Assembly (NCBI GenBank): GCA_946965045.2
Contig: OX337228.1
Coordinates: 5,146,001 to 5,210,000, forward strand
From: Epithemia pelagica
Taxonomy: Eukaryota; Protista; Bacillariophyta
Length of the DNA: 64,000 bases
Direction of reading: 5' to 3'
The notes beneath the pieces are model-generated. The model did no database searches and was not told the origin of the DNA. It saw nothing but the letters and a program-made list of their open reading frames with translations. How positions within the stretch are numbered: the first letter of the stretch is position 1; every line of letters begins with the position of its first letter. This document shows, piece by piece, positions 16,697 to 25,290 of this stretch. The position numbers and the translations under genes were made by a program.

Positions 16697-16926
16697 GGTG
16701 GCACTTTAATTGATATCACCGCTTTGACAAGCATCAACACACTGTTTTCGTTGTCCCTCTCTATCTTCGTCCGTATAAACATGGCGACGCGTCCATGTTG
16801 TTGATGACGAGTCACCATCCCAAGCGTCGACCATCTATTGGTGACGTGTTGGTGGTAGTTTTGGCAGTCTTTAATGATACTCATAAGCGACCCTAAAGCG
16901 ATCTTATTCATATGGCATCTACTACC

Positions 16927-16938
16927 CGCTCCATGATT
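16927..16938 (+). repeat. Left target-site duplication CGCTCCATGATT
   Basis: Identical 12-mer at 24290-24301, directly after the T14 tail. Confidence 0.9.
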
Positions 16939-17045
16939 TCCATAATTTCAAGATCAGGCGAAAGTGAAAGGACCTTTTCGCGCATTGGTTTTTGAAATTT
17001 CAGTAGCTTTAGTACCGAGTCCTACGTGCGCAAGCACCTCCGTCC

Positions 17046-18767
17046 ATGACGACCATGGCGGAACCCTCTACATCGACGCCAACAACCGAGAACATGGCAG
17101 ACGACGCAAGCACTAACACTCAAACCATCGATAATCAAGCGATCCCGTACGAAGGTGAGGAGAAAGAGTACACCCTCAAGTTTCTTTTCCGTCCCAAGGC
17201 CAGCAAAAACACCAACGTCGCGAAGAACCACTACGCGATTCTCCAAGCCATGCTCCAAGTCTTTCCTGAGATTGTTCTCTTCAACAATCACGGCGAAATC
17301 ATCAATCCCAAGAAGCTCAAGACTATTCTGAACTATAACGATTATCTCCGCAATTTCAACCTCCACTTCTCCAAGGGCAATGCTGATAAGAATCGAGCCC
17401 CCATCTACATCGTTGTGCACCGCATTCGTTCAAGGATTCCTGTGAGCCAGATCAGGCGCGACAGCACAATCTCTCACATCTTGTCTGAAGGAAGAGCTAA
17501 AATGACTGTACATGGTTGGAACGAAGATGAAGTTCGCATTTCCAACATTGGTTTCTTCGTCGGATACGATCCTAGTAACATTCTTAATGAAGAAATGGAT
17601 GAATGGATCAAGAAGAAAATCTTTGAAAGTACTGGAACCTCGCTCAAAAAGATCCCCAAGTTTCGATGTGGTTTCTCGTCACCATTCCTTGTTGATGACG
17701 ACGGATATCGATTCGCAACCAAGACATTTGACCTCCAATGCCGCCAACAAGATGCCAAGGAATTGATTGAACTGCTGTCGACGACGTATCGCGATAATCC
17801 TCGATTCGTTTTTCACCGAGTTCGCCACTCTCAACCTGATACTTATCGCCGGGCTATCTTGAAGCAAAACGCATACCTCAAGAAATCTCGAATCGTCCCC
17901 ATTGAAGGATTATCTTCGGACATGTTGTGGTATGGGATGCGAGAACGTATAAATAGTATTCCTGGAGTACACCGAGTTACCAAACACCGAATGACTGGTG
18001 AGAAAGGAAGATGGAGCATCCACACTGACATGCTTCATTTCAGTCAAGTCGTCACGGCCGTGAAGGGAAATTTAACACGTTGGGCTGATGAAGTGAGCGA
18101 AGCAAACACAATTCAAACTGGATATTCATTCTTACCAAGATTGGCATTTAAGAAGAACGCATTTGATGACTACGACGACGACGATGACGAATCACACGCA
18201 AGTTCGTTTCAGACTTACATGACAGCTTGTAGTTCTCTCTATGCTGCCGACGAAGACGATTGCATGAACCCCCCATCGGATTCCGCCCCTGTTGCTCAAG
18301 CATGGGTCTGTCCTATCCAGATCAAAACCGTGGTTGCTGGTCAGAGAACGGAAGAAGCACAAAGTCAGATAACGCAGGATGATTACGACCGTCTCAAGTC
18401 CGAAAATGACAAATTGACCCGTGAAATCCGTGAGTTAAAGGACCAATTCAGACAATTTATGGAGGAACAAAAACAAGCTCGAACCACGACAGTGAGTCAA
18501 CAAGAAAAGACCAATTTCAAAGCACTCCTGAAGGCAGCCATGACTGAAATCCGCGAAGAAATGACTCAAACGGCACAATCTCAAAACCAGAACACTCCCA
18601 ATAATAGCGAAGGAAATCGGGCAGAGGCACAAGAGCCAGCCAATAACGATTCAGAACAGCGGGCTACGTCCAATCTTGACGTAAGCATGGCACAGGCCAA
18701 TTTGTCCTTTCAGGCGGACGAATCCCTGATGCAATCAAGTATGTTTAGCCATGACTCCGACTCATAG
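17046..18767 (+). CDS. Retrotransposon ORF1 protein, intact, 573 aa, C-terminal coiled coil
   Basis: Position upstream of ORF2 inside the TSD-bounded unit. Heptad-like DYDRLKSENDKLTREIRELKDQFRQF. No canonical gag knuckle seen. Confidence 0.8.
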   Translation: MTTMAEPSTSTPTTENMADDASTNTQTIDNQAIPYEGEEKEYTLKFLFRPKASKNTNVAKNHYAILQAMLQVFPEIVLFNNHGEIINPKKLKTILNYNDYLRNFNLHFSKGNADKNRAPIYIVVHRIRSRIPVSQIRRDSTISHILSEGRAKMTVHGWNEDEVRISNIGFFVGYDPSNILNEEMDEWIKKKIFESTGTSLKKIPKFRCGFSSPFLVDDDGYRFATKTFDLQCRQQDAKELIELLSTTYRDNPRFVFHRVRHSQPDTYRRAILKQNAYLKKSRIVPIEGLSSDMLWYGMRERINSIPGVHRVTKHRMTGEKGRWSIHTDMLHFSQVVTAVKGNLTRWADEVSEANTIQTGYSFLPRLAFKKNAFDDYDDDDDESHASSFQTYMTACSSLYAADEDDCMNPPSDSAPVAQAWVCPIQIKTVVAGQRTEEAQSQITQDDYDRLKSENDKLTREIRELKDQFRQFMEEQKQARTTTVSQQEKTNFKALLKAAMTEIREEMTQTAQSQNQNTPNNSEGNRAEAQEPANNDSEQRATSNLDVSMAQANLSFQADESLMQSSMFSHDSDS

Positions 18768-21700
18768 AGACGACTATGTAAGCGATTACATAGACTTTGC
18801 TCTTAATCACTACCCCGACAATTCTACACCCAATCACGACACCGAAGATGACATACTAGACGAACAAGCAGAGAATACCATTCTGGACGATAGACAAACG
18901 CAACAGCAGAGAAATTACGCAAACAATCCTTATATTGGCACAGCACCACCAGAAGAAAAAGAAGATTATGTCTTCCGAGTATACGGCGCAAATACAAATG
19001 GCTTCAATCTCGGACGTGATGGTGCGGACTTCTCCGAATTTTGTGAAGAAATGAAGAACCTAGAAGTGTACTTTCGAGCATAACCTGGATACATTGAAAC
19101 CAAAGGTCAGAGAAGTTTTAGACACAACGGTCAGGAAACACTTCGACTACGCAAAACTTGTTACCAGCACCTCATCAATATCTTTACACCGGAGAAGTAC
19201 TTTTAAACCAGGAGGAACACTCTTGGTAACACAAGGCCACCCAAGTGGACGTGTGGTTCGACAGGGACACGACAACCTTGGACGATGGAGCTATCAGGTC
19301 TTATCTTGTAAGAACAGTCGCTCACTGACCATTGTGTCAGCATATCAAGTGTGTCAGCAGCAGATTTTGAACAATAATCGTGTTGCAAGCAGCACGGCAT
19401 CATCTCAACAGATCAGTCTTCTTCGACAACAAGGTCGTTCTGAAAACCCACGCATGGCTTTTGTTCACGACTTGGAAAACTTCTTAGACGAAAGAATACA
19501 AGCAGGGTCGGAAATCCTTCTGCTTGGAGACTTTAACGAAACCTTGAATGAGACTATGGACGGAATGACAAGACTTTGCTCAAATTTACAGCTAACTGAT
19601 CTGATGGAACAGGTAACCAATACGGAAGGCAATTTCGGGACTCACGCTAGAGGCAATCAACGAATCGATTATGCTCTATGTACTGAACTGGTCGCACAAA
19701 GCGCGGTCGCACAAAGCGCGGTTAGAGGATGTTATGAACCCTTTGGCGAACGAACTAAAGGAGATCATCGTAATATGATCATTGATTTCGACTCGAGGAT
19801 CCTGTTTGGTAATATGACACAACCTCTCGGACCTATCTCAACAAGGGAGTTTACTGCGAAGGACAGATCGGCGGTTAGAAAATACATACAGGCAAAGCAC
19901 AAATATTTGCAGGAACATAATTTCGGACATCGATTGGCTTCTCTTGAACATGAGTGGAGTGCAGAGACAATGGAGCAATTAGACGCAGACTTTCAACGCG
20001 CTGGAAGATTTGCTGCTAATCAGTGCATCAAGAAACCACGCCAGATCGCATATGTAAGAGAATTAGCTGAACTGCGGAAAAAGAAGAATGTTCTGTTGAA
20101 ATTGATATCTCAATACAAACTCCATCGCTCATATGCATCGGGAATCGCTCACGCAACAAGAGATGGCTGCACATTCACACTTCCTAACAGTCTGGAAGAA
20201 TGTATCGAAGAGTGCAAAGAGACTCAACAAAAGATACGGGAGATGACACACGATGCCGCCACAAATCGTCGGAATGAACAACAGGTTGCTTTAGAAACTG
20301 CTCGCATTAAGGGCGATACTAAGACTACCAAAGCTATTAAGCACAGAATGGCTGCTGAGAGGACAAAAACGATGTTTAACAAAATCCGCCAGTATCGAGG
20401 AACCCAAAAGACGGGTATCACACGATTGCAAGTACCCGTTGACGCTGACAATGTGGACTACGAACACTGCACAGAGTGGCTAACGATTGATACACCGGCA
20501 GAAATTGAAAGCCGTCTACTGCAACGGAACCAAAAGCACTTTGGACAAGCCGAGGGCACCTTTCCGACCCAACCACCCTTCTCCAAATGGGTGGATTGGG
20601 GAGCATCGACACACACCGCTGAACTAATTCTGAACGGTACATGGCAATCTACCGAGTTGGACGATCTTCAACAGTGTCTATTGCGTCACATGGAGAAACG
20701 AACTGAGCTTGATTTGATAAAAGACACAATTAGCGTTGACGAATGGCGTGCCAAAATTAAAGCGTGGCCTGAATCGACAACGACGTCCCCGTCCGGGTTT
20801 CATCTTTCCCACAGTAAGGCCCTGTTGGCAGCACACGACATAGAGCCAGGAACTGACGAAGCAAGTGACATCGAACGTATGCGAAATGACCTTATTGAGT
20901 GGCAAGTTGGTCTACTCAACAATGCGATTCGACATCAATATTCTTTCGAAAGGTGGCAAAAGATAGTCGATGTTATGATCCTGAAAGAGCCGTCGAATAT
21001 CAAGATCCACCGCTTGCGCGTTATTCATTTATACGAGCAAGACTATAACTTGCTTTTGGCTGTAAAATGGAGAAAGTTGATTCAACATGGAGCACAGCAT
21101 CAGTTACTACATGCATCTCAATTTGGTGCCGTTCCAGGTCGTGACGCCGTAATTCCAACAATGATCGAAGAGTTTCAGTACGAAATAAGTCGCGCCAGCA
21201 AGAGACCGATGGTGCACCTCGACTACGATGCAACAGCTTGCTATGACAGAATTGTCATGTCTTTTGGTGGATTAGCATCACGAAGTTTCGGACAGCATCG
21301 TTCTGTGGTCTTTATCAATGCAACAACACTCGCGGAAGCAAAGTATTATCTCAAAACTCAATTGGGAGTGTCTGAGAGATTCTATAAGCATTGTACAATA
21401 TACCCAATTTACGGCTCTGGGCAGGGCGCGGGGAATTCTCCGGCCATCTGGTGTGTGATAAGCTCGATCCTATTCGAGACCTATGAAGACAAGGCACATG
21501 GAGCAACATTCTATTCTCCTGATCGAAAAACATCTGCCCAAGTACTCATGGTCGGTTTTGTTGATGATACCAGCGGAAGCGTCAACGACTTCCTTCTCCC
21601 GAAAGCAGCCAGTCCTGAACACTATATTCAACGCGCCTCAGCCGATGCACAACGATGGAACGACCTCCTGTCTCTTTCGGGAGGATCTCTGAGGGTACAA

Positions 21701-24170
21701 CAGACATACACCGAACGCTGTTGTTTTTGGCTCTTCAGACTTTGGAGGACTGGGATTGCGTACATTGTTCATCGAACGAGGGATTGCCCAAATCTATGGT
21801 CTACTAGCTTGTCTGCGCTCTTGTGGTGTTGCTTCACAATTGGCTAGCATCATGCTAAGCTGGGGACAACTGTTGGCTGGAACTGGATCTCCGATTCTAC
21901 AAGACACGATAAACGACCTCCCTCATTTGGATCCCATGTGTTGGCTACCGACTTTGCGTGCTTCTTTATCTTGTATGAACTGTACTATCGAGCTGGCTGA
22001 TACGCATGTTCCTCCTGTTCAGCGGGAACATGATCTGTTTGTTATGGACAAAGCCCTTACTGTGACTCACAAACCTATTGATTTGCAGTTCATCAACGCT
22101 TGCCGAATATACCTTGGAATCACTTTTCTTAGTGACATGGTTACCCCTGCTGGAACTCAAATTTGTCAATTCGCCTTACAAGGGTATCAATCCACGCAAA
22201 CGCAACCTAAACTATTGTTTCCGTACCAAAATCGACCTGGCAGTAAAGCATGGAAAGTCTGGAAAAACTTTCTCCGAACATTGATCACACCTGGTACTAC
22301 GTGCAACCTTCGTGTCTGCCTTGGACGCTGGTTAGTCACTGGTTCTGCTCTCTATCGAGAGTGGAATACTTATCTTGTTCCAGAACGGAGTCAAGTCTTG
22401 ATTTGTACGCCTAACACAGATCAGTTCACAATTTGCATTCCTACTGCCGATTACCGTGGGTTCTGTGCTACTCATTCCAGCTGTCCTCTTCTCCCCTCCA
22501 CTGCACTTCCCGTATTTACTCTGCAACGCAACAACGTTCACATTCTGGCGCACTTTGCCTACGCATCTTGCTCCGACCCTACACCTAGTCCTTCTGCATC
22601 TTTCTCAGACGTTATTTCCTCCTTGGAGCGTTGGGAAAGAGAACTTCTTTGTGGCGTCTCGTTTTTGTGTCCTCTCGAGCAGCTTCATGCTATTTTTACG
22701 TCACATGACTCCGCAACACAGCTGCCGTTACATCTTTGCGGAGATGGTTCCGTTAATCACTTTGTGGGCTCATTTGGTGGGTCCTGTTCCGATGACGCAG
22801 GCTTACGATTGTTTCATATCAAGGGACCTGCACCAGGTTATCGCACAACATCGTATCGCGCGGAAAGCTACGCCTTTCTAGCTTGGTTACGCATCATCTT
22901 TCGACTGTGTGAATTTTTCGAATGCCCGCTGCCGTCACAACTGGCAATTTACTCGGATTCGGAAAGCATGTTGAAGACGATACAGCAACGTTTGGAGTGG
23001 ACCGTTGACTACCCCTACACAACAATGAGTCCCGATTGGGATCTTCACCAAGCTATCACAACCACACTGCGCCTATTCCCTAACCTGCCTCACTGTCAAC
23101 ATGTGAAAGGCCATCAAGACAGATTTTTTGCGTTTGACGATCTTCCTTTACCCGCGCAATTGAATGTGGAGGCAGATGAGCTTGCCTCCCAGTTTGTATA
23201 CCCTCCGGATTTGCCAAGCACCATCGTTCCTCTTATCGCAGGCACGGTGGCGCAATTACATTGTGCTACTGGCACCATTACCTCCAACTATCGCGCCGTA
23301 CTTCGTCGCTTATACAACGAACCTTTGATCCGCGAGCACATTTGTTCTCGGATGGAATGGTCAACTGACACCTGGAACCTGGTTGACTGGACGTCTCACT
23401 GCAGAGCCGTTCGTGCAAATTTTCCACGACGCCATTTCTTGTCCAAATACCTCCACAATTGGCTGCCCTTGGGGCATCTAGTTTCGCGCTATGCTGATCA
23501 TTACCCAGACACATGTGCGTCTTGTTCTCACCAAGCTCACGAAGATCGCGAGCATTTTCTGCGTTGTCTGGCTCGTCGGTCGTGGATTGGCCCTCTGTTC
23601 GATGACTTGAAGCAATTTTGGCAGGACCAGTCGGTTGCCCCTTCCATTGTCGATCTATTGTCCACTGCACTTCATTCTTGGCTTTCGGATACCCCTATTT
23701 CTCTCCCGTCCCTGACCCCATCATTGGCTCGTGTGGTGGCTCAACAAACTCTTATCGGTTGGGACCAACTGTTTCTTGGTCGCTTCGCTTGTTCCTGGTC
23801 TTCAGTACAAGAGGATCATCTCCGGTCTCTGGAGATTGATTCGTCCAAGAGTATTTCCGGCACTGCCTTTGTCTCAGGTACCATTCAACTCTTATTTCAC
23901 CATTTGTTCCTCCTCTGGACTCGTCGCAACGAGGATGTCCATGGACGCGATTCATTGACACGCGAAGCTGCCGCTCTCGTTCTGGCTAAAAGAGAGATTC
24001 GATCCCTTTATCAACACCGTAACGCTGTTCCCACTGAGTTACAGCAGATTTTCTACACCGATCCAGATACACACTTCGACTTTCATACAACCTCTTCATC
24101 TCTTCAATCCTGGCTTGCTACCTGGAAGCCAGTTATACTACAATCCTCATCTTCACCCAACAACGCCTAA
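18751..24170 (+). pseudogene. Retrotransposon ORF2 (APE endonuclease, RT, RNase H, C-x2-C-x8-H-x3-C), broken at about 19068 and about 21692
   Basis: APE: NTNG, FEHNLD (frame-shifted), GDFNE, RIDY, GDHR. RT: GAVPGRD, DYDATACYD, GSGQG, FVDD. RNase H: GDGS, RAES, SDS, HVKGHQD, NVEAD. Also a 15-bp in-frame tandem duplication at 19690-19719. Confidence 0.9.
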
Positions 24171-24210
24171 CTAACATTCCTACCTGGTTAGTCCTCGCCT
24201 TGTTCCCAAG

Positions 24211-24270
24211 GCCGGGCGCGTCGGTCGACTCTACTCTGCGCGGGTGAGTACGGCAGCGTTAAAATAGACT
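24211..24270 (+). other. Putative structured RNA motif in the retrotransposon 3' UTR (copy A)
   Basis: By hand, about 46 of 62 aligned columns match 24316-24375. Self-complementary segments: GTCG/CGGC, ACTC/GAGT, and GTC/GAC as a possible pseudoknot. Confidence 0.55.
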
Positions 24271-24289
24271 AGGACTTTTTTTTTTTTTT

Positions 24290-24301
24290 CGCTCCATGAT
24301 T
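24290..24301 (+). repeat. Right target-site duplication CGCTCCATGATT
   Basis: Identical to 16927-16938. Confidence 0.9.
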
Positions 24302-24315
24302 CCGAGAGTAATGGC

Positions 24316-24399
24316 GCCAGGGCAGTCGGTCGACCGTACCCTAGCGGGTAGGCGCGGCAGCTGGAAAAATAGACTATTCCCATCAACAACAACAACAAC
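24316..24399 (+). other. Diverged copy (B) of the 3' UTR motif in flanking DNA, followed by (CAA)5
   Basis: Shares GTCGGTCGAC, GCGGGT, CGGCAGC and AAAATAGACT with copy A. TACCC-tagc-GGGTA hairpin. CAA tract at 24384-24399. Confidence 0.6.
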
Positions 24400-24458
24400 G
24401 AAGACGACGACGAGAATATTACTCCTACATATGTATTCGCCGTCGATAAAGTCGAGTG

Positions 24459-25290
24459 ATGAACTCGATACGAGAAGTTCAGAGTATAAATGAGGAAGAA
24501 TTGAAGCTGGGTATCGCAGGGACGCGTGCATCGTGGCATTCAAAGTACGCAAAATCAGCTTGGATCTACGTTGGAAATGTTGGATACGAACTAGTGGAAG
24601 GAGATGTCATTTGCGTGTTAAGCCAGTACGGGGAGATTGGTAAGGATGCTCGTACTCTAGAACTGATGACAAGGTATAGCAGCGAGACTCGTCTCACGGA
24701 AGTTTTCTATTTAATCCAAAAACAGAAGATTTCCATCTAGTGCGAGACGAGGAGACTGGAAAATCAAAAGGTTTTGCCTTCTGCAAATACGAAGATGCTC
24801 GAAGTTGCATTCTTGCTGTCGATAACTTCTGTGGGATCAAGGTGCGTGTACTGCTTTTCATTTCAATGTTCCAATTTCTCCATTCATTTACAAAAATTTG
24901 TTTCTCTGCATGCAACAGCTTTGTGGGCGGTCTTTGCGAGTAGATCACGTCGAAAACTATCGATTGCCAAAAGAATTGCAAGAAAAGGAAGAGGAATGTG
25001 TTGACATCACTTCCCCTGGGGCTATGTACAAAGGATCCACGCTTGCAAACGAGTACAGCTTGACGAAAGGTGTTGATTTGTTCGCACCACCTCAAGATGA
25101 AAGCACGCAGACAGAGAAACCAAAGAATAGAAATGAATCGATTTCCGATTATAACCGACAAAGAGAGAAACGCCAACGTAAAGAAGAAAGGGCAGAGAAA
25201 CGGAGAAAAAGACAAGAACGCAGAGAAAAACGCGAAGAGGAGCATCGTGAACGTAGAGCCAAGCGCATTAGACGAGAGAACAGAAGGTAG
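24459..25290 (+). CDS. RBMX2: RNA-binding motif protein X-linked 2 / Ist3-Snu17 (RES complex), 3 exons (24459-24639, 24726-24841, 24919-25290)
   Basis: SWH-x-Y-x2-SAWIYVG, SQYGEI, RDEETGKSKGFAF and LRVDHV match the RBMX2 RRM. Two GT-AG introns keep the frame. Basic/acidic tail. Confidence 0.9.

Follow-up and report, generated by a model that had tools for sequence, protein, structure and literature searches.

The sharing of 3' tails by LINEs and SINEs is textbook knowledge in animals and plants, and the stringent type of LINE/SINE pair, which was reportedly described by Okada and Ohshima, includes the eel pair UnaL2/UnaSINE1 as well as CR1-type and RTE-type pairs, all with a common 3' tail. 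Site-specific non-LTR elements that read DNA away from the nick are also well known; R2 gives footprints tens of bp from its cut and the elements TRE5 and TRE3 of Dictyostelium are found near tRNA genes. Stringent LINE/SINE pairs are among the subjects of the review PMC3747384, and in one survey of diatom transposable elements an RTE-like family is the only non-LTR family mentioned.

The locus presented here lies in a stretch of 64,000 nucleotides from the diatom Epithemia pelagica (the whole of this stretch is referred to as the window) and was described in an earlier note as carrying the same motif of about 60 nt twice, once within the 3' end of a retrotransposon and once just past it. Direct reading of positions 24000-24600 and 16700-17200 together with an alignment of the two copies to each other showed that both copies are real. 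Copy A (24220-24269) and copy B (24325-24374) have a mean column identity of ~74%, the blocks previously given as invariant (GTCGGTCGAC, GCGGGT, CGGCAGC and AAAATAGACTA) are found in both, and TAGAC closes each of them, at 24269 inside the element and at 24374 just outside. The two copies are members of different subfamilies. In our judgement the 60-nt motif is probably a 3' recognition module of a LINE and a SINE, which came to be present twice in the window through re-use of a site downstream of a GCGAC word. The features of the locus are as follows.

16879-16902, plus strand: host target word ACTCATAAGCGAC, with GCGAC at 16887-16891 (the 12-mer is found in the flanks of two other LINE-A copies)
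16879-16902, plus strand: variant of the host target word, AAAGCGAT, with GCGAT at 16898-16902 (direct reading)
16916-16925, plus strand: putative left target site duplication (TSD) of the older SINE, CATCTACTAC; weak, 8/10 match to 24381-24390, starting 24 nt after GCGAC
16925-16938, plus strand: SINE 5' stub CCCGCTCCATGATT (a BLAST of the reconstructed empty site against SINE copies begins here; alignment)
16927-16938, plus strand: left TSD of the LINE, CGCTCCATGATT, perfect over 12 bp (direct reading)
16939-24289, plus strand: LINE-A, a non-LTR retrotransposon of 7351 bp with a 12-bp TSD, a 5' end ..ATAATTTCAAGATCAGG and a poly(T) tail
17046-18767, plus strand: ORF1, 573 aa, with a C-terminal coiled coil (translation)
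18751-24170, plus strand: ORF2 in three pieces, 18751-19083, 19094-21847 and 21756-24170 (translations)
24197-24212, plus strand: stem-loop 1 of the tail in copy A, GCCUUG-UUCC-CAAGGC (MFE fold; compensatory variants across subfamilies)
24220-24229 in copy A and 24325-24334 in copy B, plus strand: GTCGGTCGAC core (direct reading)
24220-24257, plus strand: stem-loop 2 of the tail in copy A, a long bulged hairpin and the core of the motif in the earlier note (folds, covariation)
24258-24275, plus strand: single-stranded conserved GUUAAAAUAGAC followed by the subfamily-specific hexamer UAGGAC (invariant in 87 exact-pattern copies; alignment)
24276-24289, plus strand: sense-strand T14 tail (direct reading)
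24290-24301, plus strand: right TSD of the LINE, CGCTCCATGATT, which is SINE sequence (direct reading, alignment to SINE copies)
24290-24381, plus strand: remainder of the 5'-truncated SINE, copy B (matches to other copies, SINE anatomy)
24323-24363, 24365-24374 and 24375-24381, plus strand: parts of copy B, namely the hairpin, AAAAAUAGAC and the end UAUUCCC (SINE anatomy)
24381-24390, plus strand: putative right TSD of the SINE, CATCAACAAC, the first base of which doubles as the last SINE base (direct reading)
24381-24399, plus strand: flank past the SINE, including a (CAA)5 microsatellite at 24384-24398 (direct reading)

When copy A was used as query against the window's own genome (60.5 Mb in 23 contigs) dozens of matches were obtained, and the pattern GTCGGTCGR...AAAATAGAY was found there in 87 exact copies as against one for the reversed control. 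The LINE-type tail word GGCAGCGTTAAAATAGA is present 136 times in the genome at no more than one mismatch and the SINE-type tail word 71 times, the reversed control being 0 in both cases; since copies A and B both belong to such dispersed families, their likeness goes beyond chance. Every LINE tail is followed by 5-6 nt specific to the subfamily and then by a T run on the sense strand (median 8, range 2-32), and a poly(A) tail of the L1-like kind is not present. The copies bearing the LINE tail have TSDs of 10-19 bp and their 5' truncation leaves anything from 52 nt (short copies of 52-136 nt) up to the full length. Duplications, 5' truncation and T runs are signatures of target-primed reverse transcription, and TSDs, a variable 5' truncation and a variable terminal repeat are present in the LINE and the SINE alike. 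Judged by these sequences, copy A represents the 3' tail conserved in a family of poly(T)-ended, probably APE-type LINEs with several subfamilies.

A minimal variant of the tail was observed in locus L005 at 1727-1790 (G000:C6:1295180-1295243), 214 nt downstream of a normal tail on the same strand. It has one hairpin, ACGCUGCC...GGCAGCGU, followed directly by UAAAAUAGAC, and may be the mark of a further LINE family using the same terminal word.

LINE-A has a second copy on contig C9, which is 98.6-98.9% identical to the copy in the window, and its 5' end is common to the loci L070-L073. Three long ORFs lie on the plus strand of the element. The motifs GDFN, IDY and FVDD can be read in the translations of ORF2, and the domain order as read is an APE endonuclease, a reverse transcriptase with FVDD, RNase H and a C-terminal CCHC. 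The Pfam matches of ORF2 to RVT_1 (E 4.7e-4) and RNase_H (E 5e-3) are both below the Pfam cut-offs, while an ORF2 homologue (P0010, 38% identity, 96% of the query) has both PF03372 (Exo_endo_phos) and PF00078 (RVT_1), and a phmmer search of ORF2 against PDB revealed no relative. ORF1 is without a domain recognised by Pfam and gave only scores below 0.8 when searched in the ESM Atlas; neither Pfam nor the ESM Atlas search with ORF1 revealed a DNA-binding domain for GCGAC.

The ORF2 in the window is broken by an in-frame stop at 19084-19086, which separates the beginning of the APE domain from the rest of ORF2, and by a frame change at ~21756-21847 (near 21800), ahead of the RNase H part. The LINE-A copy on C9 (L009/L079, G000:C9:1515650-1522630) is split within the tail hairpin by an insertion of ~7 kb, which has terminal inverted repeats starting with GTATAAATCCTGCCACTACACGC and is probably a DNA transposon.

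Copy B is found in a different kind of element. At least 40 other places in the genome, among at least 89 candidates, match the sequence 24303-24381 at 95-99% identity, and the longer copies of this SINE continue upstream through a body common to them and a head containing A and B boxes (TGGTCGAGTGG and GGTTCGAGTCC). The full SINE is 257 bp, with a copy in locus L036 showing a 14-bp TSD and no T run. Its two boxes are ~50 nt apart, and its head was matched by neither the ARAGORN nor the Rfam tRNA models; ARAGORN identified no tRNA on the SINE loci, and Rfam gave no match to the full SINE up to E 10, so that it is by its promoter boxes that the head could be called tRNA-derived. The T runs of the SINE range from absent to 10 (median 4), copy B itself having no T tail. 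The last ~60 nt of the SINE are homologous to the LINE tail, with the hairpin kept through compensatory changes, and the tails of SINE subfamilies match those of particular LINE subfamilies in both hairpin and terminal hexamer; as an example, a long-loop hairpin and a UUCAAA end are common to one SINE subfamily and the L057-type LINE. In the reconstructed empty site the homology to the SINE begins at ~16925, just ahead of the left duplication of the LINE. By homology to these copies, copy B is a 5'-truncated copy, ~97 nt long, of a SINE bearing a LINE tail. That it would instead be the host gene of a structured non-coding RNA and no retroposon at all, as could be read from its folding into a hairpin and from the absence of a T tail and of a clean TSD in the window, is barely credible next to its 95-99% identity to dozens of dispersed copies that show TSDs, variable 5' truncation and T runs, and next to the lack of a match in Rfam.

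Since the SINE is without a clean TSD (8/10), the position of its nick in the window is uncertain. In the flank past it, the (CAA)5 at 24384-24398 is one unit (3 nt) shorter in contigs from two public runs of the same organism. The public contigs break at the repeats, and neither an empty allele nor an RNA 3' end was seen in them.

RNAalifold and single-sequence folds of the tail gave two adjacent stem-loops. The pairing in stem-loop 2 was assessed over 14 pairs in 26 diverse LINE and SINE tails, where 92.6% of the cells are standard pairs as compared with 28-48% after a shift of the 3' partners by 1-3 columns. Changes on both sides are seen in six of the 14 pairs, and the observed covariation score was reached by none of 500 shuffles. 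Stem-loop 1 varies in sequence by subfamily with its complementarity kept, and the SINE has a stem-loop 1 of its own (CCAUGA/UCAUGG), in the 5' arm of which the LINE of the window is inserted. Hardly any variation is seen in the single-stranded AAAAUAGAC or the GUC located between the two helices, and this includes both trinucleotides of a GUC/GAC pseudoknot that had been suggested earlier; the same holds for both sides of a candidate closing helix formed by UUAGUC upstream and GACUA in the tail. At one position of stem-loop 2 the pair is A.C, G.U or A-U, reminiscent of an isosteric wobble.

The module was also found, with further compensatory hairpins, on two marine metagenome contigs (L142 and L143; JGI Ga0307387_10043153 and Ga0115011_10076958), which indicates that the family exists in other environmental organisms, and in the assemblies containing ORF2 homologues the tail is interrupted after stem-loop 1 (L140) or the sequence ends short (L141). 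No match to 24100-24450 was found in Rfam up to E 10, in line with the remark in the earlier note that no named RNA family resembles the motif. The covarying tail hairpin fits a signal for recognition by the reverse transcriptase, common to the LINE and its SINE. This was one of the explanations offered for the motif when it was first noticed, and with a 257-bp SINE, the homology of its last ~60 nt to the LINE tail and the compensatory changes it is the one that fits best.

The duplication flanking the LINE in the window is SINE sequence on both sides, which points to the SINE as the older insertion and the LINE as the newer one. LINE reverse transcriptases are known to make chimeras, such as U6/L1, and a single event could accordingly be pictured in which a LINE-SINE chimera was formed by template switching or a downstream SINE was carried along by 3' transduction. 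This is highly improbable for the present locus, as the duplications flanking the LINE (12 nt in the window and 17 nt in locus L053) are sequences internal to the SINE, a situation to be expected only with a SINE present in the DNA beforehand, while no other copy of the composite junction is present in the genome and copies A and B are of different subfamilies and ~74% alike.

A complementarity across the insertion had been reported as well, and the two sequences concerned, CTACCCGCT at 16922-16930 and AGCGGGTAG at 24343-24351, are in fact reverse complements of each other. The idea built on it, that the insertion interrupted a self-complementary unit, fared less well: the ordinary SINE sequence CCCGCT accounts for six of the nine bases, the remaining three are chance flank, and a disrupted host structure at the empty site is without support.

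The left flanks of LINE 5' ends were compared, and thereafter the LINE and SINE insertions with clear duplications, giving 25 independent sites. The three LINE-A insertions have ACTCATAAGCGA in common, located 42-51 nt upstream of the element and outside the duplication; the 13-mer upstream of LINE-A occurs only three times in the genome, twice in front of LINE-A copies and once at an unoccupied site. Among the 25 independent LINE and SINE sites, 13 have the end of a GCGAC 20-27 nt ahead of the TSD, which at a background of ~1 per kb per strand gives a binomial P of ~1e-21, and in the downstream flanks, which served as control, GCGAC is present at background rate only. Ten sites were fetched after the idea had been formed; five of them are canonical, a sixth shows GCGAT at 24 nt and a seventh GCGAC at 31 nt. 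At two more sites the word is found in reverse orientation at 22-23 nt, and about one quarter to one third of the insertions, depending on the variants counted, have no recognisable word at the canonical distance.

The consensus of the target word is C-A-W-R-W-GCGAC-Y. The 11-mer CAAAWGCGACY occurs 221 times in the genome as against 61 times for the reversed control (a 3.6-fold excess), and all of the 20 word sites sampled are free from any member of these LINE and SINE families, indicating that the word is a widespread host sequence existing on its own. Outside the ~11-nt word the insertion flanks are unrelated, and the target is not one defined gene or repeat as for LINEs of the R1/R2/TRAS type. 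About half of the TSDs start with T, as would fit a primer ending in A that anneals to the U run.

Two other candidates in these flanks were discarded. The 12-14-mer upstream of LINE-A was considered as a part of the element, i.e. a 5' leader, filler DNA or a 5' transduction, and rejected because the TSD lies between word and element, the spacer is different at every site, the word is absent within the LINE and insertion-free word sites are common. An enrichment of CATG in the TSDs was dropped when the signal faded as sites were added.

Several further observations concern the word and its surroundings. CAAAWGCGACY is often found in tandem or inverted pairs (GGTCGC...GCGACC), for example in the loci L120-L139, and might have a role in the host as a regulatory site. 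The left flanks of L018 and L072 have ~45 nt upstream in common (CACCAAAAGYACGACACASATGCGACCCGAC), the word there being part of another repeat. In L072/L078 (G000:C2:4038528 and ~4046250) the 18-bp duplication of the LINE lies within a 47-nt tandem duplication of the target, and when read in that way GCGAC is again found 23 nt upstream.

What the insertion sites have in common is a short host DNA word, GCGAC, ~24 nt upstream, instead of the structured host element that LINE-A had been suggested to mimic. Another suggestion was that the element targets the 3' ends of its own relatives. Combined with the idea of a mimic, it would recognise the tail motif of a resident copy as DNA or nascent RNA and insert beside it, and for this speak the presence of the tail both inside and outside the element in the window and in L053 and the resemblance of AAAAUAGAC to AAAWGCGAC (7-8/10 positions). 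Homing is nevertheless very unlikely, since most insertions defined by a TSD have GCGAC in their flank and no tail copy, TAGAC is found at the canonical position in no site, the distance to a resident tail varies (35, 65 and ~150 nt), and the newcomer enters at the 5' edge of whichever fragment is resident. The part of the suggestion that stands is that copy B is an older, 5'-truncated retroposed copy; the part that falls is the targeting of the relatives' 3' ends, a second tail being absent near most insertions and newcomers entering at the 5' edge of older copies.

In the window the TSD of the LINE starts 24 nt after GCGAT and 35 nt after the exact GCGAC, the canonical range being 22-27 nt, and the spacing of 24 nt is thus true only for the one-base variant GCGAT, which may have acted as a second target word. 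The locus may then represent two successive insertions aimed by one cluster of target words. Re-use of a site is seen elsewhere in the genome. Contig C11 has a GCGAC, a spacer of 25 nt and then three occurrences of one 16-bp TSD: ahead of a long LINE copy whose 5' end is intact, between this copy and a 52-nt fragment from another subfamily, and past the fragment. An identical pair of cuts was thus made in two separate insertions. In locus L026/L053 on contig C6 a LINE of another subfamily is located directly 5' of a SINE fragment, the 17-bp duplication is SINE sequence, and in L053 the SINE-derived 17-mer adjoins a spacer of exactly 24 nt after GCGAC. Among the listed tails, 5-6 same-strand pairs within 1 kb were found as against ~0.24 expected, and no opposite-strand pairs.

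These counts bear on the possibility of a chance nested insertion, where the LINE would have landed by accident beside an old retroposon tail and the two events would be unlinked. A composite of this kind is unique in the genome and 26 of the first 30 loci have no second tail within 1.5 kb, as expected from chance, but the excess of same-strand pairs, the threefold identical 16-bp TSD on C11 and the GCGAC upstream at a fixed distance make it unlikely, as does the start of the LINE TSD only 0-3 nt from the 5' edge of the SINE fragment in both cases of a LINE preceding a SINE. The earlier note had associated a chance event with random flanks, no motif nearby and pairings without covariation; the pairings do covary, and most flanks are indeed without a second tail, yet GCGAC recurs upstream of them.

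At the 5' junction of the LINE in L053 (G000:C6:1085000-1094999, minus strand; ~1051-1390 of the reverse complement) a perfect palindrome of ~300 bp was observed, which is centred on the 17-nt duplication; past the palindrome come 19 nt of filler and then the 17-mer once more. The arrangement resembles the product of snap-back synthesis from the nicked top strand at insertion.

Returning to a shared module and a re-used site, the mechanism proposed is as follows. The module would consist of two adjacent stem-loops, the single-stranded AAAAUAGAC, the hexamer and an oligo(U) end. Several subfamilies of APE-RT-RNase H LINE would end in this module, and the 257-bp SINE with its putative pol III A and B boxes would have acquired the same one, with different SINE subfamilies carrying the tails of different LINE subfamilies. 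The reverse transcriptase of the LINE, as we infer from the tail sequences, would bind the module and start target-primed reverse transcription on the U run, and the retrotransposition machinery would nick about 22-27 bp downstream of the host word C-A-W-R-W-GCGAC-Y. A nick at a set distance from the word would make insertions stack head-to-tail with the newest nearest the word. For the window, the first event would have been the insertion of a 5'-truncated SINE, and LINE-A would later have inserted 2 nt inside the SINE 5' edge and duplicated 12 nt of SINE sequence, the motif being present twice because the same genomic spot was used twice.

The tail decamer (U)AAAAUAGAC and the target word (C)AAAWGCGAC are alike at 7-8 of 10 positions. 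A doubtful addition to the mechanism would be that one surface encoded by the element reads both the tail RNA and the DNA word, in which case the tail RNA would mimic the target or compete with it, or that the RNA docks on the opened target as a measuring device, in which case the tail hexamer and the U run would span the ~24 nt to the nick and set both the nick position and the length of the tail.

A search of the published literature, the coverage of which was incomplete, brought up neither a LINE with a poly(T) tail nor a SINE/LINE pair from diatoms, nor a target word of this kind. The module is well defined by covariation, and its oligo(U) end, which takes the place of poly(A), corresponds to the 3' end that pol III SINE transcripts naturally have. 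A probably APE-type LINE and a SINE would here be steered to ~24 bp downstream of a host word, with cuts reproducible enough to remake a duplication of 16 bp. If the targeting is true, the family provides a compact system, found in nature, for studying how distance from a DNA word is measured by a non-LTR element, and the places of new insertions in this genome would be predictable.

When compared with the stringent LINE/SINE pairs, the diatom elements are similar in having a SINE with a putative pol III-type head and with its last ~60 nt homologous to the 3' UTR of the partner LINE, a conserved terminal stem-loop, TSDs and 5' truncation, and SINE subfamilies that track LINE subfamilies. They differ in the terminal repeat, which is oligo(T/U) on the sense strand instead of poly(A) or short repeats like (TGTAA)n, in a module made of two stem-loops and an invariant single-stranded decamer, in the target word upstream and in the host being a diatom. 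With R2 and the TRE5 and TRE3 elements they share an insertion position fixed relative to a sequence away from the nick, and repeated use of a site with stacked copies. Unlike that of R2 the endonuclease is probably of the APE type and not RLE, and unlike R2, TRE5 and TRE3 the elements have hundreds of target sites, marked by a short dispersed word, in place of a single multicopy gene. By analogy with human L1/Alu, an autonomous LINE would mobilise a pol III SINE by target-primed reverse transcription, and, as for human L1, around half of the TSDs have as their first base the one found in the tail (A in L1, T in the diatom elements), pointing to annealing between primer and tail. The human pair is relaxed and dependent on poly(A), whereas the elements described here have a specific structured tail, U in place of A and a target word upstream.
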